From assembly GCF_003704095.1 (NCBI RefSeq), contig NW_020843837.1:434001-498000 (forward strand): a stretch of 64,000 bases of DNA, written 5' to 3'. The first letter of the stretch is position 1. Every line of letters starts with the position of its first letter. Below, in pieces: positions 124-29,500 of the stretch. This DNA comes from Pocillopora damicornis. Lineage: Eukaryota. The notes under the pieces are model-generated. The model was given only the letters and a program-made list of their open reading frames with translations. It was not told the DNA's origin and did not search any database. The position numbers and the translations under genes are program-made.

Positions 124-3100
124 CTGGTCTGATTCAGACATCTTAGTAGTAAGTTGAAACATGGTATCTCCAACTGACTTCACAAATCGTTTCAGACCAC
201 CTCCACTGAGCGCTGCAGTGTCTTTAGCTCTGGGTAACTTTGTAGAAAGAGAAACAATTTTCATCAGTGTCACTCAACAAAAGTTTAGTTAAGGTGAAGT
301 CATTAACACAAAAAAACTCAAGGAGCATACAGAGTACATCCACAAAGCACTTAAAAGAATTGCCAGGCTTAAAGAACTATTCAAGAATAGGACATCATAC
401 ATACCACATCAGCTTCCAAAAATTGTCGGAAATCTGGATCTTCACGTAAGGTTGGATGTCGGGCAACTCTGTTAAGATACCTGGAGAGGAAACATCAATG
501 GATAGTAAAATTAAGTGAAAGATAGAGTGCAAATTATTTTAGTCACAAAAGCTTAAAACAAAGAATTGCTTCCACATTAACCCTTAGAACCCTAAAAGTT
601 GTTAGCCTCTATCTTCTCCTTACAATATCACCCCTGAATCACATATTAAGACCAAGAGAAATGGAAAAGCTCATCAACTTAAAAGGCTCTTGATTTTTAG
701 ACAAAGTATCTTTATCAGCACCTTAGGAAATGTACAGAGAACAGTATACTAAGAGAATCTGCATACTGATGTTAGGGTCTACAAGATAAATTCAAAGTAG
801 TCATAGCTGGATAGAATACAACAGTTGATACAAGTAGTTTGAAGAATGAATACCACAACTGAAAAAGGAAAATTAACACTAAAATAGAAAGAAAATAAAA
901 GAAAAGTATATAAATGGGTAAATGAGACATGCAGCTCATGCGTTAACAGCAGCAGTTTAACAAAGCTGGATTGCAACTTTTAGATCTGTATCACAGGCAA
1001 TTTTCACAAGTAATTTACCTCTCTAAGGCAGCTCTCCTCTTGGAAATAAAGTCAACTGGGGTGCTTTCCTCTCCTTTTCCAAGCTTGACCCTGGTCATGC
1101 CTGAAAATAAAATAAATAAATACATCTTAAACTTGTACTTAATCTATAACAAAAGACTATTTTCTCTTGAGCATTGATAAACCATGAAGTTTGTGTAGAA
1201 ATTAATGGCAAACAGGCAATTTTTTCACAAAGTTTCAGTGATTACTCACCAACAACAGACTTCTCAGGAGCTGGGGGCACAATCTTTCCAAGGTGAAGAA
1301 ATTTGCTATTTAATCGATCATGGAGTCCTAGAAAATCACTAAATCGACGCTTCACAGATGTCTCTGAATTCTTGAATGTCGGCATACTTGTCTATGGTAA
1401 AGTAAGGTCATAAGTTTAAATTTCAAATTTGCATTCATCAAAAATCAAAGCTGCCGTTGGATTTTTTCTATAGCTGTTATCTACCTTGAAATGGTCTCTT
1501 TCTAAAGGCAGTAAAATAAGTGTGACAAGAGTGATAAACACATTCATGTACAATATCTTAAGAAAATAGGCAAGTGTCAAGACGTTCTTTAAATCGGCTA
1601 CAGTCAGTTACTTTTAAAAAGAAGACTAGGGTTGTTGTTAAGTGCAGGCTGCTGGCAAAATTTGTAGGATGAAAAATCTGGCAGGATTTTTTCCCAGTCC
1701 AGCCATCACTTACTAATGCACAATGGCATTCTGAGGTTACACACTTATAATTGTTCAATGTCTAACACAAAGTTTAAGCCTGCACCCTAATTTCTAACCT
1801 ACAACCCTGCAACAAGGTAAAGAATCTCTGATCAGACCTTTGGAAGTAATGAGTGAACAGATCTATATAAATGAAAAAACACAACAGTGCAAGTCAAACA
1901 GCAAAAAGGTCATATAATTTTTAACTTACCATTGTTGTCACTTTGAAAACCATATAAGAACCCATGCCATCACCTGCAAAAGTAACATTAAATAGAGGTG
2001 TGATATGCTTGCCCCTTTACCTCCCATGAGTTAGTTACCAGTCCAGTTACGAGGATAAATAAATATAGAAATTAAGGAATTATTTGTTGATAAAAATGGT
2101 TTGGTAGCCAGTAAGGAGAATTACTAATGAGATGTTGCAAGTTAAAAGGTTAAATTGATGAAAAAGAACTTTTAGAAATATCAACCTGTAGATCTTCAAT
2201 GGCAGACCTCATTATCACAAGAGGAGTTCTTACAAAAAGTTAAGGATAATAGTGTACAAACAGGTAGCTCCTCTTGAAATAAGTCCTTTTCTTTCATATA
2301 CCTCTCCTCAAAAGTGGCCATTGAAATAAAGCCTGCTGACTCTAGTTTACTTTTCAGCACATTGTACTGTGGTTTTTCAAACTTTTTTTTTTAAAGGAAG
2401 TAAAAAGAATTTAGGGTCACATTTACATGGGATTTGCACTTAATGTACTCAATAACGACTGAATTGCTGCAGTTCAAAATTCTTGGGTAAAAAGTGAAGA
2501 ACATATTTCACAAACCAGAGCTGCTGATAGTGCTGACTAAAAAACTCCAAACAAAAGAAATGTTGAGAAAACACACCGATCTTTTCAGGATCTGTCACTT
2601 TAATATTCATGTCAAAGGTGTCATCCTCCTCGTCTTCTTCAACTTCCTTTTCCTGCAAGGAAAATCAGCATCTCTTGGAAGAAAAATCGTAAATGTTTTC
2701 CACTTAAGGTAGAATAAACATCTAATTATTATAGGGTAAACCAGCAACAACTCATTAACAACTTATCCATATATATTTACGCATTTATAATAATACAAAG
2801 ATACACTTTTGTTTTAAATTCAGTCCTAGACTTTGAGATGATATAATGCGTGAATCGATCAATTAACCGAAAGTAAACTGAGTTGGGTCTAGCTATCTGC
2901 CAATTAGACAATTAAAAATGGGAGGGATTGAGAGTAGTCATTCTGAAAATAGATTCAGATAGAGCCCAATAATATAATATCTTCGGTATCTACAACCTCA
3001 GGTTTTTCTGTCGGAGCTGGTTCGCTGTCATCCTCGCTCGGTTTCGAGAGGTTGGTGACATCCACGGAAGCCGCCGCAGAAGTTTCGGACTTTTCCTCGC

Positions 3101-3296: not shown

Positions 3297-5087
3297 TTTA
3301 ATTTTCTGGGCAGTCACGTGGGGATTGCCTCGACTTAGGGGAGAGGTGTGTCTAAGGTTGTTCAAGGTGTGCTTTGTAATTTCACTTTTTTCTTTTTTCT
3401 CTCGTTTTTTTTCCCCTTCATTTGCCTCCCCTCTTCCATTCTGTCCATTGTATTCTGTTTAACTGAATTCATTCCTCTTATCTGATGCATTCACTATTGA
3501 TATTTATTTGCCAGTTTGGATAGAATGTTTAAAACAGAATTGACAGCTTCTCTGTTGGTCGCGCATCGCCTTTCACCTTCAGTGGCTCGCTCGACATTTA
3601 AAATTTACAGAGGAACTGGTCTTTCATCTTACCAGTCAATATGTCAAGGTTTTTTTAATCAAGATTTCAATTTTAAAAAAAAAATTTCGTCGACAATGAT
3701 CTACATGTCCTAAAATGACATAACCGTTATGTGAAATCCGACGACTGATTCAAACTACAGGAACTTGAACTTTTCTGATCAAACAATCGCGTAGATGAAT
3801 GGAGAACTTTCAAGCTTACCTTCCAGCCTGTGTTTGTTATTTCATTTCCAAATCTGCCCTCTCCCAGAAAGTGAAATTATCTCACACAGTCATATACGAT
3901 CACTATTCATTTATAAACGGACTGATTAAAAACATCAGTAACTACTTAACACTAATTAAAATACTGTTCGATAATAACGTATTTTCAAGATCAAATATAT
4001 TGAAAGCGAGCATTTACCGACAAGGTGAATAATTCGTTTAACAATAACATAGAGGGTGAAACATGTTTCTCTTATTTCATTTTTTTGAATTTCGAAGTTA
4101 ATTGCAGCTTTGTACTTCATATTCGTTTATTCGGTTAGGCTAAACCCTAGAATTCTTCTAAAATATCTGGTTTCCTCGGGTCAGTCAGCCAGGTGTTCGC
4201 TACTAGATAATTTTTTTACGAACCCAAACCTTTCGGATGTGATATACCCCATAATCAAGAGAAAGGTAATATTCTAAAATACCAGGACAGAGAATCCATC
4301 CCATAATTTCCTTTGCTGTAATACATGGGCAAAAACGATTTCTCGTCAAAATAAAGTCCATATTATCTGTAATCTTGTTTATCACACCGTGCCAGCAGCT
4401 TCATTTTTGTTTCTTTGTTTGTTTCTTTCCAAAAACACTTTGGGTAGTTTAGTAGAAACTACATTTTAGGGGCAGGGGGACCACATCAATTTATTTTCTC
4501 GAACTTCCGCCGTAAAAACTCTGGGGTATTCCTCAGAACTATTGAAACCTTCTACACGGATACGATCTGCAATGGTATCTTGATATAAGCAAAGGCTGTA
4601 GTCACTCAGGTGGTAAACAACATCTCCAGACTGACAATATAAGAACATTTTAATCTAATGGAGAGGGAGTGTTGACTCAGCAGACCACAGGTATTTATTG
4701 CGGTCAGAAGCATTATAATGAATTATACACGGTTTACATAAAATAATATATATATTTTTATTTTCAAAAATCATGATGCCTTTAATATATGCTTTGTATA
4801 AATTTGAAAGATAATATAAATGGTCCATATCGAATTTCTATATACATCATTTATACTCTAACTTGCTTTCCACCTAGAACTCGTCTATGAATAGCATCGA
4901 ATATCTTCAATAAATCAGGGTAAGTCAAAACAATTATTTCAGTCGACAGGTGCAACACATAAGCTCTTTTATATTTGCGGAAAGTCAGTGGAAGTAAAAA
5001 CTAAAAGATCTATTCTTTGGTCATTAAAAAAAATTGTGGATGAATATTAAGGACAATTGAAGAGACCTTATTGATACCCCATGGTAA

Positions 5088-5890
5088 TCAAAATAACGAG
5101 TCGGAAAGGTTATCATAATCGACAGAGCTTTCCAATTCGCTCTGGTTTGAGTCCTCAAAACGAGACCGCAGTCTAATGGTCGCATTGTTTATTACGTCTT
5201 GTCGAATTTTCCAATACGGTGGACACGAGCTGCCGTAGATTTCCACTTGAGTATGTCCTTCGGGAATAACAAGACCCAAAGCGAAGTATTCATCCAGAAA
5301 GCTTGCATGCTCGAGATAATAGCGAAATAGCACTTGCGCCGTTTCCGCGTGCGAAATGACAAAGAAAAAAAGCTTAACAATTGTGTCATCGTCTTCATTT
5401 ACCATTACCGGCTTAAATATTGCCCTCCTGTCAGAAGGAAAGGTCCCATTTGAGTGATCTCTCTTCCAAATGCGTTTATTCTTGCAGCTTCGAAGAATTT
5501 GTCTCCAAGAACATTTCTCAGTCGCATAATTTCCTTGACAACTCTTTCCGCGTCGTGTTGTTTAGGATCTATTGTCATACGACTCATTTCAATTGTAGCT
5601 GCATCTAAAACGCTGATGACTTTTAATCGGTAGTTTTCAAGTTCTGTTCTGGATGTACATCGGCGAATTTTCTGTCTCAAACCTTGAGCATGCTCAAGTT
5701 TTAGTAAAAGGGTTTCCAGTTTCGGATCGGTGTCGACGTCAATTTCCCGGCCACGATCTGTTGACGTGGCATGATCATCCTGTATATAGCCTTTTGGTCT
5801 CGAACTTTCGTTCAGTAATGGAGTGATATCGAGATCTAGATCTTCATCTGCGGACCACTGGTGGCATTCTTTGGTAGGAAAGCAACCCAT
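5088..5890 (-). pseudogene. Uncharacterised family paralog 1 (MGCFPTKEC...CPPYWKIRQDV), split by a 1-nt frameshift; pseudogene or assembly error
   Basis: ORFs 5405-5947 and 5088-5405 overlap at TAATG. Adding one A at 5413-5414 gives GQYLKPVMVNED, matching GQYLKP of paralog 3, and a ~267-aa protein from ATG 5890. Confidence 0.75.
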
Positions 5891-7371
5891 CTCTTCATTT
5901 GTAGACCTGTGATTTTCAGTTTTCAGAAGTAGAAAGCACCTTATCAAAACTCATTCGCCAATCCCAGTGTCACGTTTGGTTCTATGACGTTGTAACAAAC
6001 ACAAGGAAGCTTGATGTGACCTGATGCGTAAAATTAATGTGGGAAAGAAAATGCAAATATGCGCCTGAACAACTGAAACGAAAATACAATAGCGCAAAAT
6101 CCCAAGAGCTTTCATTTCCTATTGAAACAGTTTAATCGTTGATGTAAATAAACAGCAAAAGAGTAACTGCATATCACCCGTGCGTAAGAGCTAGATCAGT
6201 AATGATGTGTTAAAAAGTCAAAACTTTTGCAAATGCAATATACTATAAGTATTTACTCAATAGAACTCACGGTAAAGCTTTAAGAACTTTATCTACGAGT
6301 TATGAAAACCTTTATTTACAAAGTGGAGCACAGGAACAATGTTAAAGAGTCTAAACGCTGCATACATAACAATCCTTAATATTATGTGGGAAAAGTGACG
6401 TTTCAAATCATTTGGGCAACACACGCGGTTCTTCCACACCAAAGCAACTTTGACGTCAACTGATGTGAATAACGCGAACGTTTGTCTTTTAAAAATGTTT
6501 TGCTTTTCAGGCTATATCGGTTTAATTAATTTTGCTTGTTACGTCACGAAACAAGCTTAAAAATTCCGAAGCGAATGTTTTGAATGATTTGCTTTCGACC
6601 ATCACAGGTTTCGTTAAAATTAAAACTTTTCACACAAAAATATTGTAAATATAGTTAACTGAAACCTATCAAGTCCCAAAATTTCGAGATTGATTGTCTC
6701 GTTTGTGAGTAGGAAAGTAAGTGAGTTTGACCATTCGCTTGCAAAAATTACAGGGGGGGAGGGGGGGGGCGGAGGAGAAGAGCGGATGGAGCCCTACTCA
6801 CGAGTTAGCACTGGCAATGATAAAAAAAAGTAAAAAACAATAATGAAAACAAGTTAGAAATAAGGTAAAGGAATGAAAAAGCCAAATTCAACTCCTGCGA
6901 AGATTTCTCACTCTTACTAGTATTCACAATTGTAGGCGTCTGGTGCTCTTGCAAGATTGAGATTGAAATCTTTTACTGAATTCTGAAGAGCCTTGCGAAA
7001 GAATGGAATGGAGACTTTTCCTGTTTTTGGCACAGAAAAGATGGATTTGAACGCGTAAAAACAACTTCCACATCAAATTTGGACCAGAACTGACGAAGAT
7101 AAGAGGAATCGTGTGACGGTTTCAATGAGGCTCTAAGCTACTGTTCACAAAAATTAGCCTGGAAGCTTATTTTCCATACAGTAACTTAAACTACCATATC
7201 AGTATAATTTTACTAAAGGCAATGGTTGCTATATTAGAGGAAAGGTTTGAGCAGGTACCAGAGAACATGAATTGACGGAATAGAAAGGCTGTTAACTTTT
7301 TTTTCTTAATGGCACGCACTGATTCCGACAAACAGATTATGATTTGCCTGCAAATCTGCCTCGCTCTCAAC

Positions 7372-7507
7372 GTGTGGTTTCGTAGCTCAGTTGGTAGTGG
7401 AGCCCAACTAGTATCTGTGAGATTCGAATCCCGTCGAAGCCTGAATTTTTCAGACACCTTTTCTGCAATTGCTTAAATTGCAGTTCACCTGAGAGAATAT
7501 TTTTCTT
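7372..7507 (+). mobile_element. tRNA-derived SINE
   Basis: A box TAGCTCAGTTGG (7383-7394), B box GATTCGAATCC, then a tail shared with the copy at 28.5 kb; no closing acceptor stem. Confidence 0.75.
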
Positions 7508-8169
7508 TACTAAACTCTAAACTCTTGGTATAATTATTTTTCTGAGCCGTAGGGGTTCTTTTTTTTGTTTCGTTTTGTGTTTCCTTTTGAGTTCGTTTTG
7601 CTTTGTTTATGTATTTCGCCTTTCTTCCGCCAAACTCACAGTAACGAATGATGAACTCACGGAACCTTATCATAAATATTTACACAAATCGTATTGCACT
7701 GCTTGATATCAATTCAAGTGACACTCTAGTTCTTCAAACCAAATTCAAAACTGCAGTTCGGGATGAAAAATCATTACTACCGAGAAAGGGATAAATATGC
7801 TATGTGTCATAAGGCGGGCTGAAAGTACGAGAATGTGAATTATTCCTACCGTTGTAACATTTTTGTTTTTCTGTGTAAGATTTTCATCTTGAAGTGAATG
7901 TAGTTAGAAGAATTGAGTACATGTATTGATAAATATTTTCCTTCAAACGGGAGGAGTACAGGTCGATCACTTAAAGTGTTATGTACTTTTTCGCCTTAAG
8001 CATCAAAATCATTAAGGTATTGGGGATAAAAATAATCAACATCAAACTAAATCAATATACTTTAATGCTGGAAAAGATATGATGCGGGAACAAATTGAAA
8101 AATATAATCAGATTAGCTACCTCGGGATTTTTCCATAGTCTTGGAGCATCACATACTCATTTTTTTTTC

Positions 8170-8533
8170 TGAGCGAACGAAGTTTACTCCAAAGTAATCA
8201 AAGTCAAAAATGAACGCAGCACTCGTATTTGTCTAATCTGGGCGATAATATCAGCATCTAATGAGCTAAGTAAAGTATTGAATACTTTGCGAATTCTGAA
8301 AGGTATTTGGAATTGTCAACCATAAGGAAATTGTTCAAATAACATGCATTTGAGGGAACGAAGTTTACTCCAAAGTAATGATGTCAAAAATGAACGCAAC
8401 ACTATTATTTTTGTCTAATTGAGGTGATAATTTTAACATCTAATCAACTAAGTAAAGAATTGAATAAATTCTTAATTCAGAAAGGTATTTGGAATTGTCA
8501 ACTATTAGGAAATTGTTCAGAAAACATGCATTT
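8170..8533 (+). repeat. Tandem dimer of a ~182-bp unit
   Basis: GAACGAAGTTTACTCCAAAGTAAT...GAAAGGTATTTGGAATTGTCAAC...AACATGCATTT occurs twice back to back. Confidence 0.9.
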
Positions 8534-9240
8534 CTGCTATTAAATCACTTGATTTGTACATCGACACATTTGCAATTTAATCACCTACACTGATAGTAAA
8601 CATCAAAGTTCTACATTTCTTTTTTTATAATGGCCAAGAAAATAAGTCAAACGTAGTTATTTCAGTGAAAAATAACAAACAATAAAAAAGACAGAAATAC
8701 AAAAGTTATTCGATAATGTTTATCACGACGGAATACTGGACATCGTAAAAGCTCTTTTACGATATTTTTTGATATAATCTCAATTTATTTGGTAACTGAG
8801 TGAGGACGTTTCTTTATTGCTGCCAGCACTAGTAAAAAATATTTGGTTGCCTTGAAATGCTTAACTTTCAAATGATATTTACTGGTTTATTTAGCAGAAG
8901 GAATATTCTAAGAAAGCATACATTCAACTTGTATGCAGGTCTATCCGCATTTCATTTGCTTTCGGCTGAAATGTTTTTCTTTAGTCTAAAGTTTCCATGG
9001 CAATGAAGCGGTTCAATTAGCGCTGCTTTTTCAGCACGCTTTGGGGCGGCACCAATTAAACAAATTTACAAAGTTATAATTTCACGGTGTGAATTTTGAA
9101 GGACTTAAGATGATTTACATCATTTCCACTTGAAAGGGATGTCTTAGTTTAGTGTTAACTGTGAATAATGAATCTAACTTTTGATTTGAAGATATGATGT
9201 GGATTTTTGAATGATAATAATAAAAAGATAAGATATTTGA

Positions 9241-10047
9241 TTTGTCGCCCAGTGTCTTCCGTGTTGGCAGATAGTGCTATCGTCATTTTCCTTGAATTTT
9301 CAACGCGCTTTGGTCACCGAAGACAAATTTGTACCTTCCCATTATGCAAACTCATCGAAGCAATTTCGGGACGACAACTCGAGACTTGACGGAAGAGCAC
9401 GAAAAAGTCGGGAAGCCAATTTTCAAACCACACAACTCACAAATGTTTGCATCGAGGACAACACGCTTCGAGATCTAACCTCAAAATTGGAGAAAGCGCT
9501 TTGCTGGACGAGTAAACACGACGTGTGTTGGAGTGTCGAGTTTTCGGAGTCAGTAAATGAATTATTTGTTGACGCATGTCGATGCATGAGCGATCTTGCC
9601 GAAAGTGAAGACTACGGGAAAGCTGATGAAATCGTAAAAATGATTCTGCGGTTGAGAACTGCTTGGGGAAACGAAGCATTTGAATATCTCAACATAAAGT
9701 CTTTTCCTCGCGAAAGAATCGAGACGAAAAATGCTGTCATTCTCGCTGGGCAGTACTTTACGCCAGAGCGATTTTATGAGGATGATGATCGGCTGTTTAG
9801 ACTATATTACTTCGAAGTAAGGGAAGCAGAAACTAATGAATTCATGTTTACGTATTACTTAGAATGTAGTAATATCTTGCAGAAATTTCATGTCCTCTGC
9901 TTGTCGTGTTCTGGTGGACATTTGCAAATAACGAAATACGGAAAAAATTGCCCGTGTTATTGGTCTGTTCGAGAGGACATGCTGAGGGATTTTCAATATA
10001 AAGAAGATAGCGCTCTCGTCTCGCATAGTGAGGTACTTAAAAACTGA
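9241..10047 (+). CDS. Uncharacterised family paralog 2 (...CPCYWSVREDM); start codon unresolved
   Basis: Open frame from 9241 to TGA at 10047 aligns with paralogs 1 and 3 over ~180 aa (FPRE, GQYF, YYLE, GHLQ, YGKNCPCYW). No in-frame ATG upstream of the homologous region. Confidence 0.75.
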   Translation, partial: FVAQCLPCWQIVLSSFSLNFQRALVTEDKFVPSHYANSSKQFRDDNSRLDGRARKSREANFQTTQLTNVCIEDNTLRDLTSKLEKALCWTSKHDVCWSVEFSESVNELFVDACRCMSDLAESEDYGKADEIVKMILRLRTAWGNEAFEYLNIKSFPRERIETKNAVILAGQYFTPERFYEDDDRLFRLYYFEVREAETNEFMFTYYLECSNILQKFHVLCLSCSGGHLQITKYGKNCPCYWSVREDMLRDFQYKEDSALVSHSEVLKN

Positions 10048-13000
10048 ACGAGAGTTAATGGTATGGTAAAGATTATCCAGCGTTACATATAACAGGTACT
10101 ATTTGTGATAAAGCAATGAAGAGAGTTTTGAAAAAATATTTCAGGATTTTTGAACCTTAAGAAATTAAGTTAAAATTTTTTAATTCGTCTTTGGAATTCC
10201 ACATTATCTTTGTTACCTTTTCGTATGTTCGGGCATATCTGGTGTTTTTTTTGCCGAACAATAATTTAAAGGTGTTTTTATTTAGTAGAGAGGTATTTTT
10301 CTATGCAGATAAAAAACATGGTTCAGTTTCCTTAGTTATTGAATCGCGCGCCGACTCCGATGGAAAGAAACGGCGTCAGTAATAGCTGAATTCCAGGAAA
10401 ATTTTGACTGATTTGGTGTAAGACGCTTTTAAATCTATCGCTTGCGTTCTATCTGTATAGGTTATATTTTTTGTGTTGCATGTTAGTCTTCATATCACAA
10501 ATAATTTCGTAGAATTCCTCATATTTACCTATCTATTTAAATGTTTAATTTCATTTTTTCACGTCGCTTTTTACGAATTTGAATCAAAGTTGTATCTGGT
10601 CGTCGCTGTCATTACCGCGGACGGTAATCCTCTCACGAACTCACCTCCAGTATTTGTGCTACGAAACGAATCTTACAAATATTACAAAAACAAAGAACTC
10701 GTTGGGAATAAATGGGTAAAACAGTTTTCATATTTACAGCCTTCCAAACCAAAACATCCGTGTGCATTCAAATTTGTGTATATTGCAAAATGTAAATGTA
10801 TTCTCTACTTCGAATGAAATAATTATATGTAGTCTTCGTTCATTAGATTTAGGTCAACATCGAACTGTTCTGAGTAGAACCTGGAGCCTAAACGGACCTT
10901 TTAGGACAGATTTACGGGCCTCTGTCTGAGCCAAAGTGCTTTTGTTGTCATGAAAGAACTTGATAATTCACTCGACAAGCAGAGTTCCTTTCGCGCGAGG
11001 GGTAAATGCCGAAGTCGCCCTAAAACGTATTTCTTTTCATGTGGCAAGCAGTGCAAGTACAAGTATGGAATCTTTAGCGGTTGAAACGAAAAAAACTTTC
11101 ATTTATTACGACAGCTTGAAATTTTTTATGCGATCATAGAAAAGTCTTCATCGGAAATGTAGATGAACAGATACACCGCATTAAATGACATGATACAGTA
11201 TACAGTGATATTGACATTCATAGGGGATGATTAGAAATGATTTTTAGCCAGCAGAATACATCATTTTAACAAGATGAAAAAAAGGGTAAATACAAGGGTT
11301 AGTTCTTGTCGTTCTGCGGCGCAACAAATCGCCCATTTTGGTTTCACATCCTGGGAAGGCGGGCAAAGGCCTTAAAATCCCTCAATTTTGGTACTATATC
11401 CAAGACGACACATGGACTAAATTGTTGCATTTAAGCCAAAAGAAAAGGCGTCGTTTGTGTGAGTGTGTTTGAGAGTCTCACCTCCGGCACTCAGCTCTCT
11501 CCTGCCAACGCTCGCCCAGACAAAAGAAAAAAACGCATACAAAGCTTGAAAAGCATTGACGCTTGCCCTGTGCAGGGTAGCGGCACCTTGACCTTAAAGA
11601 ACAAAACATTTGTCAGTAACGCACGTGCACACCACGCAGCGGCAACGCCGCCTTGTTCGAGACCTTGGATCTTGAAAGATTTCCAGTCAAAGACGCTTTA
11701 TAGTAAAATCGTAGGCCCTTTCACTACAATTTTGTGTAACAAGACCTCTGTTTGACGGCGCCAAGGTAAAGAGTACCTCCAACCGAGAAGAAAGGGGGCA
11801 GTTTTCACAAATTTGCCCTGAGAACGAAACACCATTATTTACACGGCCAGAGCTTCTATTAAGATTTCGCACAAAGAAATCTTAATGCGTGATTCATTCT
11901 GTTCCTTTTATTACCTCTCTGCCTGTTTAACCAGTATGTGGGAAGAAGTCCATGGTATATTGCAGTCAACTCTTGGTGAACTTTGATCAAATGACCTTTG
12001 CTAATAATGTAACACCACAGTTCCGCTTAATTCGTCACTCACGCACTTTTAACTTTTCACAAAATAGCCTTTTCCTAAAAATAACCACACGAATTGTGTC
12101 TTTGTATCACAACACCGTTATCACACACAATAAAATAATAAGCTAAAAATGAAATACGAAATCATGACGCCTTTTTACCATAGCGCAAGGTCTATTTGAC
12201 TGTTCCCTGCCTCAAAACAATGTTGATTAATAGGGCCATGTTTTCGTTCAGCTGTTTCGTCACACCTTCGTGAGTCTTTCGCGCTCTGCGATTTGCGCAG
12301 CTTCCAACGAAAGTCTCTATATTGGAAGATACAAAATTCACTAAAACAAGCTATTTTGAACTTTTTCGTCAGAAACGCCATTTACAAGAAGTATCTCGAA
12401 CTGCATTAGATGCGAATTGGTTTAAGGTGAGAAATGAACTTTGGCAGTCAGTCTTCCTTGCTATTGATGCAACAACAAAATTACATTTGAAAATTGAATT
12501 TGCGTAGTTTAATCTGTTTAAATTATTGTAATCCGGCGGAGTTCTGACAATAGCTTGATCACATAATTTAAAAGCACTCAGTACCTTTTTTAAAATATTT
12601 TCTTCCTTGCCTAACAGTAAGATTCTATTTTTACACAAACAATAAAACCAGGAATAGAAAACAACCCCTGAAGTCTAAGAATGTCAAGAGACGGGGGTCA
12701 TCAAACAGTTACCCGCTAAATTTCAAAGTTTCTTTCCCCTTTTTCAACCAAAACACGCAGATTGTAATTTTTGTTACAAATTGGAGTTCTGCCGGAACTA
12801 TTTTTCATGCTCGAAAAGATTGGAAATTTAGCAACACTTGAAGACAGAACGGAACGCTTTTGTAAGAACAATTTCAGGCACAATATCTCACATACCAAAC
12901 TGTGTTCGTGACCTATGTAGATATTTTCATGCGGATCTGCCCTGTTTCCGGGCGGATGCCATTGACTGACCTCATTGTACCTTGGACTGTCGCGTAAACA

Positions 13001-13221
13001 AACTTAACTTTCAAGCATTAAAAACGTGACGAGTGCACGAAAAAATGATTTAAGCCGTCAACACGGATAATTTCATGTGTGTATCTCTGCACGTTCCCAT
13101 GAAGCTACGAGCTAAAGACAACGACAGTCAAATTTAAAAGCAAAACCGAGCAGAAGCAGGAATTGTGAATGAGCTTCGGTCGTTTAATTTTTTGCTGCAA
13201 CAAGGAAACGTTCGGTTTGAC

Positions 13222-13926
13222 ATGGGTCACTGTTGGTCGTGCATGTGTAGAGAAAAGAAAGCTCTCTTTCGTCGAGGAGGATGCCTAGAAGATTGGGTTT
13301 TCGTAGATTCCGATTTTGAAGACGACGAAGAAACATTTTACCGAGATGAAGCCCTCGACGAAATTCTGTCAGCCTTCGAGGAAGCTCTTTCTTGGCCGAA
13401 AGAACAAAACGACTTCCCCAATTCGACGGCCATTGATGCTATGAACGATATGTTCTGCATGGCTTCTTCAGAAATGTCTCGCTTGGCTTCGGGTGATAAA
13501 TTTACCGAGGCCGATGAAATAGCCGATGCTATCGTAGAACTCTACGACGTTTGGGGAGAGAGTGTCTTTAGCTCTCTGAACGTAACTTTTTTTACGAGAG
13601 AAGAGATTTCGCTCAACCGGTTTACCATTAAAGTTGGACAATACTTGAAACCAGAACCGTTGCAGGAGCGAGAAAATGACATAGCGGTCAAGCTGTATTT
13701 CTTCATTGTTTACGATATGGACCTGGAGAAATATGTTTGCACGTACCACTTGGAATACAGAGATTTTAGTGGCATGACCGCTGGAATTTATTTTCTGAGG
13801 CTTAAATGTCGCAGAGGAAGGTTCCAGGTTGCATCTTATGGCGAGAGTTGTCCAGTATACTGGAAGATTCGACAAGATGTTTTGAAAGACTTCTCCAAGA
13901 GAAAACGGACTTTTATTTCATGTTAA
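13222..13926 (+). CDS. Uncharacterised family paralog 3 (MGHCWSCMC...CPVYWKIRQDV), 234 aa, intronless
   Basis: ATG at 13222 in ORF 13165-13926; shares FTRE, GQYLKP, YHLE, YGESCPVYWKIRQDV with the other two copies. Confidence 0.82.
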   Translation: MGHCWSCMCREKKALFRRGGCLEDWVFVDSDFEDDEETFYRDEALDEILSAFEEALSWPKEQNDFPNSTAIDAMNDMFCMASSEMSRLASGDKFTEADEIADAIVELYDVWGESVFSSLNVTFFTREEISLNRFTIKVGQYLKPEPLQERENDIAVKLYFFIVYDMDLEKYVCTYHLEYRDFSGMTAGIYFLRLKCRRGRFQVASYGESCPVYWKIRQDVLKDFSKRKRTFISC

Positions 13927-19500: not shown

Positions 19501-22500
19501 AGCAACCATTTGTATTGAACTAAATGAAAAACAGAAACTGCAAACTCCTTAGTTCAGAGCACAAAAAGAAATTTTGTGCATGGGAAGGGAGAAATCTTAA
19601 CACAACACAGTTACTTTCAACTCAGTTTTATTGTTGATGGCTCTCATGATAAGCCATTGTGACTTAACTTCAACACCAATACTTGATATATGTACCCACA
19701 CCCCGGCAGTTCCAAGTTAATATTCCCTGTTACTTTGCTGTGTTAGTTTTTACCTTTGAATCCATTGAGCCACTCTGTAGCCGAGCTAATCGTTTTATAT
19801 ACACATTTCTAGTGCTTGTCATGATTGGACCAGGTATTTCTCCATACTTTTGTAGTTCCATCCTGAGATCATTATTAGAAAGTTTGAAAAGATTCTCTGG
19901 CACAGTTATGGATTCATTGATGATAGACTGGTCCAATATTGTGCTGCACTCCTTCCAGTCATAGAATATGGTGCTATTGCCAAAATAAAACTCTGCAGGG
20001 TCTTCATTATCTGAATATAAGAGACAAGAGGTAAGTAAGTGAAAAAGGGGAATAGAAAATATGTCTGAGAAGTAACCCTTTAACTCCCACAAGTGACCAA
20101 GACAGAATTTCTCCATACAATATCGAGTAGACAAGTGATGAGAATAAAGAAAAATATCAATTAGGAGATTATTAACTGATCCATCACCAAATTCTCTGTC
20201 CAGACTAATATCATAAGAACTGTATAACAGACAGTAGGGAATATTATTAATGAGATCTTGAGAGTGAAAGGGTGAGGGCACCATAATTGAAACAAATCTT
20301 TCACCGTGCAGGGAAATATCAGCAGGTGTATACCAGCACTTTGAAAAGAATGTATCAAATATCCTTTTTTTTTTTTGCCATGTTATGGAATAATCACCTC
20401 TTCAAACCCTCCCAGGAGATTTGGGTTCAAAACAAATGTGACCTTTGATGGTTTTCAGACAATTATTGTGAACTAGATTGAGTTATGGTCAGAGAGGAGA
20501 GGGTAGTGGACGACATTGTCATAGTCTTGTGCAAAAGTTAGAAGAAGTTAACTAAGTTGGCCTCATTGTTCATGCAGATTTTTTTTCAGCTGATGTCTTT
20601 TAACTTGTACCATAAATTGAAATATGGGAAAAAAGAACTGCAATCTTTTGATATCCAAACAAAACACAATCAATTCTTAACTTATAATATGTACCAACCA
20701 TGCTCTTGATAACTTGTATGTTCCAGCCACTGCTTTGCACCTTCTTCTACGGTTTCATCACCATCTACAAGACTTAAAAGACCATGTTCAAAGGAATTAG
20801 TATAGGTATTTCGAGTGTAATTAGGTGTCAGTAGTAAGCATAACTAAATTTTTCAAAGACAACAAAATTAGAAGAGCCTGTAGGGCTAGTGCCATATAAA
20901 GTCCTTCAAAAGTTTATAAGTGCTTACGGTATTACACCAAATCGCAAGAGAAATCATGTTCTTACTTGTCAATAATGTCCATGAAAAAGCATCACAGAAA
21001 GTCAAGAGAGATGAAATTTTGAAAGCGAGTGTGCACCATTTGTAATTTACATTGTATTACAACTTTTCACTTACGTTACATGAGAATGCACTCATTTTCA
21101 GCCTATCAGAAGTGTGTAATTTTTTCATGTACATTGTTAATGGGGAAATAAAATTAAGTGATGTCTATTAAGGGTACTCTCTCAAAATATTGTTCTAAGT
21201 TAGACAACTTACAGCCCCATTAAATGTTGAAAAATAATTTTCAAAAACCCTGGAGAGAACACCATCCTGGTAATGTGGGAAGGAGCTCATGATTGTAGTT
21301 AGAAACCAGGGCATCACTCTTTCTGGCTGCTACTATCAGTTATAGGCTTGACTCAAGAGAGAGTTCTATGTACATGTCAGAGAAATAATTAAAAAAAAAA
21401 TAGTATGTTCTGTGTAAAGCTATGATCATTTTAGGTTAGGGTCATAATAGCCTTAAACCCTTTAACCCCTGAGAATGACCAGCTTCTAACTTCTCCTCAC
21501 AATATCACCCATGAATCAAACATTAAGGTTGCGAAAATCAAGGAAATGATCACCACCTCATGAAGCTCTTGATTTTTAACCAAATTCTCCTTGTCACCCT
21601 TTCAGGAAATGTGTAGAGAACAGTATGGAGAATATGCATACTGATATTAGGGTGTAAAGGGTTAAAAAGTGAAAAATGGCTGAAGGTACATGTGCATGTA
21701 AACACCAAAAGTGAATATAACATATATTATACAATTTATACCTGTTACTGGAGATACTTAGTTCAGTAATCTTATCGACCACCGTTTCATCCAAGTCACC
21801 TGAAGAAACATCGGCACTAAACCAAGGATGCAAGTTTGGAAATGTAACCACTGTCTGATCGAGCAAACTGTCTTCTGCAATTGCTGTGTAAAATGACTCA
21901 CTGAATCCACAACTGACTTCACCAACTGGCTGTTCATGTTTCATTCCATCCCATTTTTCTTCAGGAATACAGGTTTTAGATTCGTCCAAGCTTATGTTTG
22001 ACTCTACTTCTAATATAAATTTGATACACTGTTTTGCACTGGTCCCTTCGGACAAGGAGGCAAAATCCAGAACATTTTGTCCTTCATCATCTGTTTGATT
22101 GAGATCACCTCCATGGTTTATCAATAACTTTAAATTATCCAGCCTTCCCCAGAGAGCAGCAACATGAACAGGTGACATTCCCTCACTAGATCTGACGTTA
22201 GGATCTGCAGTCCTCAAACAAACCTCCAAAACCTCTGAAGCTTCCTGATCCTCGTGCCCAGCCAGCAGATGGAGAGCAGTAATACCATCCTCTAATTGAT
22301 CAGCTCTCGCTCCATTCAAACTGAGCTCCTTAGCAAGACTGCAAACGACAAATGGATGAAAAAGGACCTTACGACTTGTTTGGTACATGTCAATGATACC
22401 TTTTTAACAAACCGCGCATTTCGATTGACCAAAAACAATCAGAACAAGAAAAATACCGATGAAAATTCAAAGTTAAAACATGTGTATTGCTTGAAACACA

Positions 22501-23500: not shown

Positions 23501-26500
23501 ATGTATATTTTTTCAATTTTTAGCGTAGGTTTGGGGCTTCTCTGTGTTCACATCGGCGCTTTTTCTCCGCCTAAGTATTCTAAATGTATCAGCAAAGATT
23601 TTGGACAAGGAGGGACCGTTTGTCTTTGCTCAGAAAACGAGTGCGACTCATTCAGCGAAGGAATTCCTCTTGGAACGGAAGAATATGCAGTTTACACGAG
23701 TTCTAAAGCGGGAGAACGTTTTAGTCTTAAGACAGCGAAGTTTGACAAGAGTTTGACGGNNNNNNNNNNNNNNNNNNNNNNNNNNNNNNNNNNNNNNNNN
23801 NNNNNNNNNNNNNNNNNNNNNNNNNNNNNNNNNNNNNNNNNNNNNNNNNNNNNNNNNNNACAAGGAGAACTTGTTTAACAATCAAGAGCTTCTTTAGTTG
23901 GTGATCATTTCCTGTATTCTTGTTACCTTAATGTTTGATTCAGGGGTGATAATTTAGGGAGAAATTAGATGCCAGTCACTCATAGCAGTCAAAGGGTTAA
24001 GTTGTGCAAGGAGACATATGTTACTGATCAGAATACATTGTGTTGTGTATCAAGCTTTTTAATCTTCTGATGGCTGCATCTTTCAACAATGATTAAAGTA
24101 AAGTTATCAGTGTTTTTTCATTGGCTCGGCATGATAGAGGCCAATTAATTCTTCTGTGTCTTCTTACAGATGCTGCCTCAATTAATATTTACAACATCAG
24201 CACAGCCTTGAGGCAGAAACTTCTTTCTTCATATTTCTCAGAGGAAGGTATTGAGTATAACATTGGACGTATTCCTATGGCTAGTTGTGATTTTTCTACA
24301 AGACCTTACTCCTACAATGATCATGTTGGTGATCTTGAGATGGCCAACTTTAGCTTGGTTGATGAAGATGTAAAATTGAAAATTCCACTGATGTTGACAG
24401 CGATGAAGATGAGTAAGAAAAACATCACATTTTTTGGAAGTCCATGGTCTGCACCTGCATGGATGAAAACAAATAACAAGATGACTGGGTTTGGTCAATT
24501 AAAGGGCAAGGCAGGAGATAAAAACCACAAAGCATGGGCTTTGTACTTTGCCAAGTTTATTGAGGCATACAAGGAGAAGGGAATAAAGATCTGGGCAGTT
24601 ACAGCACAAAATGAGCCATCTGATGGATTTATTCCATTGTAAGATAATCATTATTCTGTGCTTTTTAATAATGGGCAAGCTTTAAAGTTGTGTAGAAGCA
24701 TGGTTTAAAGTGCATTCTATGCTGCTAGAAATTATATTGAAGACTTTTTGCATTGTAAGGTAGACTTGTGTTGTTTACAAGGGTTTGTGAGGTCATAATC
24801 CAAAGCTGTGACCAGACAATTTTGATCCATTTTTACTTCCTTGATAATGATTGATTAAAGGGTAAAAATTTTGAGTTCATTCTATTAGAATTTTGTTTCC
24901 TCATCTTCTGATGATGAAAGCATATCACATAGTTTTCTTTCTCTGCATTGAATTTTGTAATACTCTAAACCCTAACTCTAATCATAGTAAAGATTTTGTT
25001 TACATCAAGCACTTACTACAAACTGTAAGTACAATCATTAAATGGGACACTAGAACATGGCTTTGGTGTCATTTCAGAAAAAAAGTCCTAAAACCATTGT
25101 GAAGTAAATAGCATTTATCTACGTCAGCATACAAATGTTTAAAAGTAAAATTGATTTTATCTAAAAATTATTTTCAACATTTTTTTTTCATTCTAGAGAC
25201 ATTTTTATACTTATAAAGAAGAAAAATACAAAAGAATTAAACTGGTTGAAATTATTTCAACCCAAATTTATTTGAAACAACAACATCTGCATTTTAGTGC
25301 CATAGATGAAATTTATTTTTTATTCTTTATCTTCCTTTCTTCCAGTTTTTCATTTCAGTGTATGGGATACACAGCTGCAATGGAGAGAGATTTTATCAAG
25401 GAGGACTTAGGGCCTATGCTATCAGCTCGTGGCCATGCTGATGTGAAGATAATCATGCTTGATGATCAGCGCATGTTTTTGAAGTCATGGGCAAACACTA
25501 TTCTTACTGATCCAGATGCTGCTAAGTATGTTGCTGGAATTGGTGTTCACTGGTATGAAGATATATTTCTTCCTGCCAAAGCGCTGAGTGACACTCACAA
25601 CAGGTGATTGCTGTGATCTAGGTTATCTGTTAACCCGTTAACCCCTAAGAATGACTAACATCTAATTTCTCCTTACAATATCACCCCTGAATCATGCAGT
25701 AAGGTCATGAGAATAAAGAAAACTATCAGTAGTAAAAGAGGCTCTTGATTGTTGCACAAATTCTCCTAGTCAGCACCTTAGGGAATGTATAGGGAACAGT
25801 ATGGAGATTACCTTTACTGATGTTAGGGTGTAAAGGGTTAAATGGGTATTATTACTATTATTATCTTTCAAGCCTTAAAACCCTGGCAACAGTATGCAAG
25901 TTCTTCCTAATGTTCTCTATACATTAGCTATGGATAATCTATCTGACAATCATGGACGTTTTAACTTGAGTTCCTAATCATTTCCTTTATTTTCATGACC
26001 TACATGTTTTATTCAGATCTGATACTCTTTGGAGAAATCAGATGCTTATCATTCTTAAGATATAAAGGGTTATTGCATGGTGTAAATTTGAGGAGAAAAG
26101 ATTCCTGTGCCAGAGAACACAAAGTGACCTTACAAGGGCTAATGTACGACTCATTGTATTTTTCTTTGCAAGAACATTTAATACACCTTTTTGATAAATC
26201 ATTATCCTCGAAAGAACAATTAGGCTAGGATATAGACATAGACAGGATATAACTAATCTACTTATACAAACTTCTAGTAGCAATTTTCAGAAAATTTTCC
26301 TGGAAAAGGATAGGATTGAAATTGAGGGAACTGAGAATTTACTGGCTAAATTTCAAGATTAAAGTTGACAAAGTTGACTCTAATTTGATTGATAACTTAA
26401 GTTGCAAATTTAAAAATGTAAAATGGTAATTACATTAACTTAAAGAAATTGTTTTACTAATATTGTAGAGGAAACTTATTTCTTTTCTCTTTGTCAGGTT

Positions 26501-29500
26501 TCCTGATTACTTCATTCTTGCTACCGAAGCCTGTATTGATCCCCACCTCTCCAAACCTCCTATAGTCAGCCTGGGGAACTGGGCGAGAGGGAATCGGTAC
26601 AGCCATAGTATAATTGAGGTTTGTGCTCTGCTTGATCTCATTATAGACACACCTTGGAATCTATGGTTTTTCATGAAAGGCTGAGATGAGAATGATTAAC
26701 ATTGTGTTTTATATCTGGTTATTCACCATCGTTACGAGTTTTAATCAAACTATTGAAGAACTGAGCCAGGAAAGATACTTTTTTTACAACTTAAATTTGT
26801 AGACGCGGTTAATTTTGCTCAGATTTTGCAAGTTTTTTTTTCTTTCCCTAGTTTTTTTTTGTATGGCCTGCCCTTTAATCGCAAAATAGGCGCTGAAAAT
26901 TCAAAAAAGAAAATACCTCTACCGTTCTTACTATCGCACTATATTTGGAAAGATATCCGTATAACCTATATTATTCTAAACAAAGCCCAGGTCCCAAGGT
27001 GATCTACTGATTTGCCATTGATTTTTTTTATCCAATACTTTATGCATAATGAAGTATTGGGCTGTAAGGAAGTCTTGTCTAATACTCGATAGTGACCGAC
27101 GTTTTGGCAACCCCAGCGTAAGTCATAGTCAAATTTAAGAGAGTAAATGTTAGTCAGTCGAGTGTTATAGGATCCTGTTCGTGGAAATTTTTCTAATTGA
27201 AATTTGCCTCAAGATTGTATTAAGGTATTTCAGCTCTGATTGTTCCGTTTCGATCCATCATTCTGTTTGGTCTGCTGGTTATGAAAAATTCGTTTTCATG
27301 GTGCCAGTAGTTGTAGACGTTAATAAGGAAAACCGGTTTTCTAAATTTGGAGCTGAGGTTCATTTATTTTAAGTGAGCTATTCTGCTTTGTAATTGTCAC
27401 ATCATCTTTTCTCTTCGCTCGTTTGTGTTCGCTCGGTGTTATATGTATTATATTAAACCAAAGGGTGTTTTTAGTTCAAAGTTAACTTAGCGGCGCAGCT
27501 CCATAGCAGGTCAACAAATGATTTATCAGCACTAAAGTATTAAACTTGTCTCCACAAAAGAAAAATCGCAATTTTCTTTCCCTTCTTTTTAGGAGTAGAT
27601 ACACCTAATTGCCAGTGACGATGTTACAGAAAAAAGCAGAAAAAAAAAGAAAAAAATCCGGCGTTAGCGTACAATTTTTTTTTAATTATTGAAATCGCTT
27701 GAAATTTCTAAACAACATCTGATACTCTCAAAAAGTTCGAAAGTGGAAATTTTGAGAAAATTTCCTGCTTCCGGGCAGTTATGGCCCGAGAGTAGTTTTA
27801 AATGCTAAATTAAATATAGTAAATAAATCCCTTTTTAGACTTGTTCCTTTTTTGTAATTACAATGTGTTTTTTCCTATGACAATGTTATTGCAGGTACCC
27901 TATACTGAAAAGGTTTACTTTTCACTTCAGGGAAAAAAATATTAGTCTTTCATTTACTTGGCTGATTTCCCAATCAACCTTGGAAGGTCGATTTCTAATT
28001 CTAGAAAGTGTCAAGGAAAATTTGAATGCTTCATTTACGGGACACTCTTCATAAAAGAATGGAATCCCTATATTAATATCTACGCCGATACCATCCGTTT
28101 TTAAGTCTTTGTTTAGAGACAATTTTAAAAATTTCTATACCATTTTTAATGAAGTATTGTTTTACTAAGAATTTTTTACATTCACAGCAGCTCTTATTTT
28201 TTGACTTGATAATAATGTTGACATTTTCTGGACGTGAAAATGTCGTTTTCAAGTTCTTTTGTTTGATTTACTTAATGCTTTCAAAGCAATGTTTTAATCG
28301 CGGTTTTTTAATCGACTCAAATGTTCGCAAAAAAAAAAAAACCGCTCCTTAACCTGGAAAATTCACAGAGCAAATAGCTGTTTTTATGAGCATGAAAACA
28401 TTTATTGACACGCGCTGGTAACTTTTCGGCGGATGTGTTTATCGTCTAGAGTCGTTTCCCTTTTTGTTACTTATTCGTCAGATAGAGAGTGATTTAGCGG
28501 ACTAACTAAAAAATTTGCCTAGCTTCTAAAGAGCGGCTGCGTAGAGCTGGGTCAGTTGGTACAACCGCCCAACTAATATCCAGGAGGCATGGGTTCGAAT
28601 CGCGTCGAAGCTTGATTTTTTCTAAGCTTTTTTTTTACAAAGCTGAAATTGCATTTCATCCGCAAAGATGATTTCTTTGTTTGGAAACCATTTTTCATTG
28701 ATTCCTGAATTTAACCTAACTTTTCGACGTAATATGTGTAATTTTCATTTTAATTAAAGTGGATAACTTGAGAACCACTCATTTCGTTGCAATATTTAGC
28801 GGACGGATTGCCACAAAGAAGGGAGTTAACGAAATTTCCTTCGTACGACACTATATTACTTTCAAACGAAGCCATGGACAAGCGATGAAAAAAAAAAGCT
28901 GTCAAATTTTGAGCAAAGATGACAGGTTTATTTGCTGTCTAGAGCAGTTCGGCCTGTCATGTATCACATCTTCCGACGAAGTGTATACATTTTGCAATGT
29001 CGTGCATATTGTATAACTCGCAGAGGTTCAGGATACTTAAAGACGTTTTTTCCGTCATTTTTTAATTCTAGCTGTTGCGAGAATATTTATGCAAAACTTG
29101 TGGTTTCTGGTGCCGCTTGGACAAAAGCTTCAAGGGACCCCTTGTATTAAGTACCCGTCATCCTCTTCTGTCTTTTATAAGAGGTGTGCCGGGGAACAAA
29201 AAAAATGCAGCTGCAGAAGAAGCAACTTAAGATGCAAATAGAAATCGCCTTCAACCTAAGGCTGTACCGTCAAATTGAGCAAATATCACTATAACGACGA
29301 CGGTGACTGGAAGAAAACGAACCTCTGTATCCATGGAATACCTTCGTTGATCAAACTATTTAGCTGAGGTTGCTTCTTTTTTTTTAACCGAATACGTTAT
29401 CGAACGGAGTTGCAGACAAAAATATTTCAGGTTGCTTTTTTATGACTGGCATACGTTATCAAGCGGAGTTGCAGCACTGAAAATGGACCAAAACCCGGTG

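Follow-up and report, generated by a model that had tools for sequence, protein, structure and literature searches.

Three anciently duplicated single-exon genes of Pocillopora damicornis encode candidate lipid-tethered proteins with an unassigned domain that also occurs in sponges and bacteria

Introduction

A Met-Gly start, Ser or Thr at position 6 and a nearby Cys form the pattern of N-myristoylated, palmitoylated proteins. Described examples are the SH4 proteins, such as the Src-family kinases Lck and Fyn, G-alpha-i, LAMTOR1 and Vac8. In this study, we analysed a 64,000-nucleotide stretch of the coral Pocillopora damicornis (NCBI RefSeq assembly GCF_003704095.1, contig NW_020843837.1, positions 434,001 to 498,000 of the forward strand), which contains a cluster of three homologous genes, called copies 1, 2 and 3 here. 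The whole stretch is referred to as the window, and positions are counted from its first letter. Like the SH4 proteins, the products of this trio start with Met-Gly, followed by Cys as residue 3 or 4 and by a small residue at position 6, but the likeness, which for the named proteins is a textbook-based comparison, is limited to the first ~10 residues and the remainder is unrelated.

The domain that follows this N-terminus can be compared with other described systems. In the predicted succession of its elements, from a bundle of three helices through an antiparallel sheet to a long helix on that sheet, it is like the alpha and beta subunits of the F-actin capping protein CapZ, which form an obligate heterodimer through a joint 10-stranded sheet. 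The FP domain of Fbxo7/PI31 and PsiB, which are protein-binding modules, likewise have an antiparallel sheet packed by a C-terminal helix. In TRIM E3 ligases a domain such as PRY-SPRY serves substrate recognition, and in one relative of the trio our domain occupies this position behind a RING, a B-box and a coiled-coil-like stretch; its predicted fold differs from that of such recognition domains, and the three window proteins, unlike TRIM/RBCC ligases, have neither RING nor B-box. Eukaryote-like proteins from Endozoicomonadaceae, a family of bacteria, are among the subjects discussed in PMC6955870 and PMC12491435. The usual classes of such repeats (ankyrin, TPR and WD40) do not include this domain, whereas three species of the family carry it, with sequences that group with the animal ones.

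Results

The open reading frame (ORF) list and its translations gave three homologous coding regions, at 5088-5890 on the minus strand and at 9241/9344-10047 and 13222-13926 on the plus strand. Copies 2 and 3 share 34% identity over 183 aa (BLASTP E 3e-35), which is far beyond chance, and a six-frame search of the whole assembly (234.35 Mb, 4393 contigs) returned these three as the only copies of the family. A preliminary description of this DNA had proposed three homologous frames with common motifs. The homology is borne out, but copy 1 is not an unbroken frame and copy 2 does not start at 9241. The motifs F-x-RE, GQY, Y-x-LE and YG-x2-CP-x-YW-x-R-x-D could be confirmed, with several of them invariant or almost so throughout the wider family.

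Transcription of copies 1 and 2 was assessed with the contigs of four RNA-library runs (X1-X4, from three studies) placed on 5000-10999. The depth of a contig does not measure expression, and DNA can occur in RNA libraries; the RNA contigs, however, have ends like those of genes, and between the genes there are only short, thin pieces.

The coding sequence of copy 1 lies at 5088..5890 on the minus strand, with its ATG at 5890, its stop at 5088-5090 and the protein start MGCFPTK; the conserved domain covers about 5169-5728. In the window this coding sequence measures 803 nt, and a break at about 5405-5415 leaves two ORFs, one of 180 and one of 105 aa. The lesion is located at 5413..5417 (minus strand), where a T-run (5415-5417) reads TTT and is one base short. 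The same run reads TTTT in the genome of another coral (L024) and CTTT, also four letters, in a further coral contig (L021). All four RNA runs contain the extra base ('A' behind 5414) at full depth. With the base restored, copy 1 reads ..GGQYFKPVMVNEDDD.., matching the family motif, and the orthologs P0031 and L024:3365-4144 are unbroken. One colinear contig of ~1.2 kb was found in each of the poly(A) runs (X1-X3) and three shorter pieces in X4. These contigs end at 5950-5983, extend past 5000 and show no joints, and the part of the transcript within the stretch examined is 5000..5983 (minus strand).

Copy 2 is damaged at its start. Position 9241 is the first codon behind a stop rather than a start, and the frame in the window has no in-frame ATG. 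In the transcripts the coding sequence corresponds to 9344..10047 (plus strand), with the ATG at 9344 and 31 nt after it that are missing from the window; the conserved domain covers about 9457-9993 (plus strand). The RNA contigs of three runs (X1, X3 and X4) hold 28 extra letters and a repeat of the ATG at 9344-9346, which make up the 31 nt. When these are included, copy 2 begins ATG GGT AGC TGC..., that is MGSCPSRSKRDANSS..., in frame with the remainder, and the same N-terminus, MGSCPSRSK, is found in the Stylophora protein P0239 and in coral locus L024. Among the RNA contigs over copy 2, the longest (2.0 kb; 8711..10666, plus strand) is colinear with the window except for the 31-nt difference, with no splice joint seen; shorter ones lie there in X2-X4, and copy 2 is covered in all four runs.

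These RNA contigs are in line with the earlier suggestion that the genes are intronless, as copies 1 and 2 are both free of splice joints. Since they carry the missing base of copy 1 and the 31 nt of copy 2, both copies are intact in transcripts. The two lesions are probably errors of the assembly; that they are real null alleles of the sequenced colony is the less likely explanation. They are not the state of the genes in the population.

Copy 3 is intact in the window. Its coding sequence (13222..13926, plus strand) encodes 234 aa, beginning MGHCWSCMC and ending KRKRTFISC, a basic patch with a terminal Cys; the domain covers about 13333-13923 (plus strand) and was modelled with AlphaFold2 (model m8dec38cb6d11). 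It is 100% identical to P. damicornis pdam_00004384 (P0001) across 13222-13926, and its orthologs start with MGHCCSC and end with KRKRSFISC. For a related coral, 12 runs gave contigs of 1.3 kb that start ~170 nt before the ATG of copy 3 and are colinear with the window through it; their size and shared ends suggest that they are transcripts. The 5' untranslated region of copy 3 is likely to be 13050..13221 (plus strand), at whose first position contigs L026 and L027 begin. Two public gene models differ from the genes described here: that of copy 3 (P0001) has 274 aa and extends upstream of the MGHCWSC start, versus 234 aa for the protein, and that of Stylophora pistillata (P0239, SpisGene6151; 465 aa) has copies 2 and 3 fused into one.

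The arrangement of the trio is conserved. In another scleractinian, contig L024 and its allelic contig L025 carry copy 1 (minus), copy 2 (plus), copy 3 (plus) and then ANKLE1 (minus), in the same order and orientation as in the window, and the proteins are 64-72% identical. Copy 1 had a ratio of nonsynonymous to synonymous substitution (dN/dS, NG86) of 0.10-0.19 and copy 3 one of 0.09; in copy 2, dS was saturated, with a dN of 0.24-0.33. In a FastTree phylogeny of 113 non-redundant domains with SH-like supports, in which the two pieces of copy 1 were joined by X at the frame break, the coral sequences formed one clade (support 1.0) with three orthogroups, one per copy (supports 0.59, 0.86 and 0.78). 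Because each copy has its own orthogroup across corals, the triplication is older than the divergence of these corals. The family is thus as old and as locally expanded as had been supposed, with the order of the trio beside ANKLE1 kept in another coral.

All three proteins share an N-terminal motif. The starts MGCFPTK (copy 1), MGSCPSR (copy 2, from the RNA contigs) and MGHCWSC (copy 3) are of the SH4 type: each has Met-Gly, with Cys as residue 3 or 4 and Ser or Thr as residue 6, and copy 3 has further Cys residues. The same kind of start is present in most animal relatives. Among 247 relatives fetched, 137 begin with MG; of these, 125 carry a Cys within positions 3-7, and in 116 the residue at position 6 is small. 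Several further relatives have an internal MGC behind a mis-called start. The proteins of the coral trio are therefore probably, judged by this motif, tethered to a membrane via dual acylation.

The domain matched no entry of Pfam, NCBIfam or PADLOC at curated cut-offs, in the window proteins or in 74 relatives, among which the RING and B-box of one fusion protein (P0071) were the only family matches. A profile search of PDB sequences gave a best E of 0.24, and the ESM Atlas yielded no usable match and no model for the copy 3 or the sponge-type domain. TPR matches were likewise absent from all 74 relatives, and no kinship to bacterial TPR proteins was seen. The view that the family is unassigned is upheld by the empty searches of Pfam, NCBIfam, PADLOC and PDB sequences. 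More generally, no confident match to a characterised family was obtained, and both transcription and purifying selection were present, so that the preliminary description of a family of real but unassigned genes survives on these points.

With 18 close sequences, AlphaFold2 modelled the domain at a mean predicted local distance difference test score (pLDDT) of 67; with 103 diverse sequences, pLDDT rose to 95.6 and the predicted template-modelling score (pTM) was 0.90. In the model, helices span residues 6-18, 31-53, 57-81 and, at the C-terminus, 176-196, and strands span 86-94, 97-109, 117-128, 133-144, 152-159 and 162-170 (model numbering). In the prediction, the ~190-residue domain is accordingly a bundle of three helices followed by an antiparallel sheet of six strands, with one more helix at the C-terminus. 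A helical part joined to a beta-rich part had been expected from the sequence and appears in the model, with a three-helix bundle in place of the expected hairpin. R126 and P211 (copy 3 numbering) are invariant in 74 sequences, and K157, Y175, E178 and Y213 are at least 90% conserved in animals and bacteria.

Fold searches were made with the domain model, and its beta half is not claimed as a new fold. Foldseek found nothing in the PDB at E <= 0.001; the best hits had E of 0.0059 and 0.046, with template-modelling (TM) scores below 0.3. VIA-align first matched only the three-helix bundle, to the generic bundles of spectrin, GAT and YopO at Z 8-9. In a second comparison, the sheet with the C-terminal helix matched PsiB (Z 6.3), capping protein beta (Z 6.1; 102 residues, root-mean-square deviation 5.0), the Fbxo7 FP domain (Z 5.2) and capping protein alpha (Z 4.7). 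In spite of the common order of elements, CapZ differs from the domain in that there is no Pfam or PDB sequence match, the Foldseek TM is below 0.3, the bundle and the sheet cannot be superposed together, and our data held no sign of a heterodimer. The likeness to capping protein may serve as a lead and is not taken as membership. The resemblance to the FP domain and PsiB is likewise limited by low scores, ~85 aligned residues and the absence of a sequence relation. In BFVD, functionally uncharacterised Klosneuvirinae proteins gave borderline fold matches (E 6e-3 to 2e-2, TM 0.35-0.49), which are a weak lead; the scan of viral contigs found no relative.

A phmmer search of 1.84 billion representative sequences placed the wider family in 66 clusters forming four groups. 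The claim that the family is lineage-restricted is true of the coral clade only, as the domain occurs also in a sponge-type branch, a TRIM-like fusion, Endozoicomonadaceae and exported bacterial proteins. In the sponge-type branch, proteins begin with MGC.. and carry a long disordered linker, and their domain is 70-95% identical between assemblies; one of them is from the sponge Halichondria panicea. In at least six assemblies two sponge-type paralogs are apparently on one contig, as inferred from matching contig sizes; one begins with MGCKISS (~430 aa) and the other with MGQCVSS (~340 aa), for example P0124/P0135 and P0122/P0136. Sponges, too, would then have a tandem pair that is conserved. 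The TRIM-like fusion (P0071) is a single continuous ORF of 550 aa on a eukaryotic contig, with a RING, a B-box, a coiled-coil-like stretch and the domain at residues 349-525. Another protein, P0053 (852 aa), matched residues 112-166 of copy 2, where the bundle ends and the first strand lies, fourteen times over; this could be a repeat protein made of a piece of the domain, or low-complexity noise.

The Endozoicomonadaceae members are 395-472 aa long, have a different N-terminal region and lie beside recA, recX, alaS and other ordinary bacterial neighbours. The domain was found in 3 of 63 species genomes of this family, including the cultured sponge isolate Parendozoicomonas callyspongiae, in a genome-collection search (alignment A6) able to find sponge-like or Endozoicomonas-like members. 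In that isolate, a 572-aa protein with weak RING-finger matches is encoded 3 kb from the domain homolog (L008:12642-14360) and would, by these matches, be another eukaryote-like gene of the neighbourhood. The exported bacterial branch is diverse, with proteins of 200-410 aa that carry signal peptides and are encoded on bacterial contigs of 54-72% G+C. A lipobox (PROSITE-like pattern) was present in at least 10 of 25 non-redundant bacterial members, and most of the others have a signal-peptide-like start; this lipoprotein pattern applies to the bacterial relatives and not to the coral proteins. FastTree united the animal and Endozoicomonadaceae sequences against the exported bacterial branch (support 0.996). 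Because of this grouping, it is very likely that the domain was transferred between kingdoms, in either direction. A firm direction was rejected on the support of 0.23 for the placement of Endozoicomonadaceae relative to the sponge and coral clades.

The surroundings of the trio agree with the preliminary description, which had placed a CpG-rich block between SNX2 and ANKLE1. A PX-domain exon of an SNX1/2-like gene (1245-1385, minus strand) is on one side, and LEM and ankyrin exons of an ANKLE1-like gene (19733-22388, minus strand) are on the other. The CpG observed/expected ratio is 1.18-1.40 in the three coding sequences and 1.09 across the cluster, compared with 0.75 in the window, 0.26 in ANKLE1 and 0.43 in the SNX region. 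In the spacer between copies 1 and 2, at 7370-7495, a tRNA-like head (GTAGCTCAGTTGGTAG ... TTCGAATCC) is followed by a core of ~33 nt (7458-7491) that is common to many unrelated RNA contigs, with loose ends on both sides; the element looks like a tRNA-derived short interspersed element. Further along the window, exons of a glucosylceramidase-like gene, of glycosyl hydrolase family 30, were found at 24121-25607 (plus strand; Pfam E 2e-61), with a short N run at ~23750 that breaks an ORF just upstream of them, and an intronless rhodopsin-family G-protein-coupled receptor ORF of 331 aa at 29432-30427 (plus strand; 7tm_1, E 1e-22). At 47001-48000 the G+C value of the composition table falls to 0.13, most likely at a long N run (assembly gap or mask).

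Discussion

We identified three single-exon, transcribed genes of ancient duplication and propose that their proteins, of 234 to about 267 aa, are lipid-tethered binding modules. This is the best reading of the trio and the most economical mechanism, and we give it a probability of about 0.5. Each protein has three parts: its N-terminus is a predicted signal for dual acylation of the Src/G-alpha type (Gly2, Ser/Thr6, Cys3-4), the linker behind it is short and acidic or disordered, and the compact domain comes last. Held by myristate and palmitate, the proteins would be peripheral membrane proteins of the cytosolic leaflet, and the domain would act as an adaptor or recognition module that binds a protein or lipid ligand. 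The paralogs may differ in their partner or membrane, with copy 3 adding a multi-Cys N-terminus, a C-terminal basic patch and a terminal Cys. In the wider family the N-terminal tether would be provided by acyl chains in animals and by a lipoprotein anchor in many bacteria, and in one lineage the domain would replace the recognition domain of a TRIM-type ligase. We infer the binding role from three features: the domain is C-terminal in a protein with RING, B-box and coiled coil, an N-terminal tether occurs in animals and bacteria alike, and there is no enzyme-like match. Every sub-structure match (spectrin/GAT/YopO, PsiB, capping protein beta and the Fbxo7 FP domain) was with a protein-binding module, and no sequence match to enzyme or toxin families was found in Pfam, NCBIfam or PADLOC.

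Several points weigh against this proposal. Acylation is predicted, with sequence rules as the sole ground. The tether is not universal, as the Endozoicomonadaceae members have neither an acylation nor an export signal. The VIA-align matches all fall within the range that the tool itself gives to common arrangements. The family-wide invariant or near-invariant R126, K157, E178 and Y175 could equally mark an active site. Literature searches by locus tags and accessions found no paper on these genes. An ESMFold2 homodimer prediction for the copy 3 domain, made with no alignment, left the chain unfolded and bears neither way.

A role of the trio in a defence, symbiosis or stress-response system, as had been suggested earlier, concerns function and is compatible with a tethered binding module; we regard it as possible but well short of probable. 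In invertebrates, a high CpG observed/expected ratio is a mark of weakly methylated genes, typically regulated rather than housekeeping ones, as seen in coral methylation studies. The ratios of 1.18-1.40 in the trio, compared with 0.26-0.43 in the neighbouring genes, would fit such a role, as would the existence of a TRIM-like fusion and the patchy occurrence of homologs among coral and sponge symbionts (3 of 63 Endozoicomonadaceae genomes). However, neither PADLOC nor immune-domain matches were obtained, and copy 1 gave a contig in every run placed and so looks constitutive, within the limits of contig depth as a guide to expression.

It is also conceivable, although rather unlikely, that the domain is a membrane-acting enzyme whose lipid anchor brings catalysis to its substrate, with the invariant Arg and the conserved Glu, Lys and Tyr as the active site. 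The strict conservation of R126 and P211 and the near-invariance of K157, Y175, E178 and Y213 would be explained in this way, and export by bacteria and carriage by symbionts are common for effector enzymes. Against this, the domain has no enzyme-family match in sequence or fold, the conserved residues could be structural and bridge the bundle and the sheet, and in the TRIM-like fusion the domain takes the usual position of a recognition domain.

We consider it improbable that the domain serves as a scaffold that dimerises in the manner of capping protein or an FP domain, with sheets joined edge to edge and paralogs forming homo- or heterodimers, possibly on the cortical cytoskeleton. The order of elements is that of capping-protein subunits (three-helix stalk, antiparallel sheet and long helix), VIA-align returned CapZ beta, CapZ alpha and the Fbxo7 FP domain at Z 6.1, 4.7 and 5.2, respectively, and the sponge-type assemblies seem to hold two paralogs per contig. 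On the other hand, these Z-scores are in the common-arrangement range, Foldseek missed these folds, there is no sequence similarity, and the homodimer prediction neither supported nor contradicted a dimer since the chain did not fold without an alignment. Finally, that copies 1 and 2 are decaying pseudogenes and copy 3 the sole gene, as the frameshift of copy 1 and the start-less copy 2 of this assembly might suggest, is largely refuted for the species by the intact frames in RNA contigs at both places in 3 studies, the intact orthologs in other corals and a dN far below dS, and we regard it as very improbable.

What is new here is the protein family and its domain; the proposed mode of anchoring is of a well-known kind. 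Our results also correct the reference, in that this assembly does not allow correct models for two of the three genes. The domain has very high predicted fold confidence and clear constraint, and was absent from all family libraries and structure collections searched; it is common to reef-building corals, sponges and Endozoicomonadaceae symbionts. A more far-reaching reading, which we put forward as doubtful, is that it is a hitherto unrecognised recognition module, tethered to membranes, and has passed between bacteria and early-branching animals. Such a module would be anchored by myristate and palmitate in corals and sponges and as a lipoprotein in free-living or symbiotic bacteria, and the host-like copies of Endozoicomonadaceae might act inside host cells and compete for the same partner. 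If this were true, the coral trio would be part of the molecular interface between host and symbiont. The family offers a testable handle on the unannotated coral proteome and on the possible copying of host proteins by symbionts.

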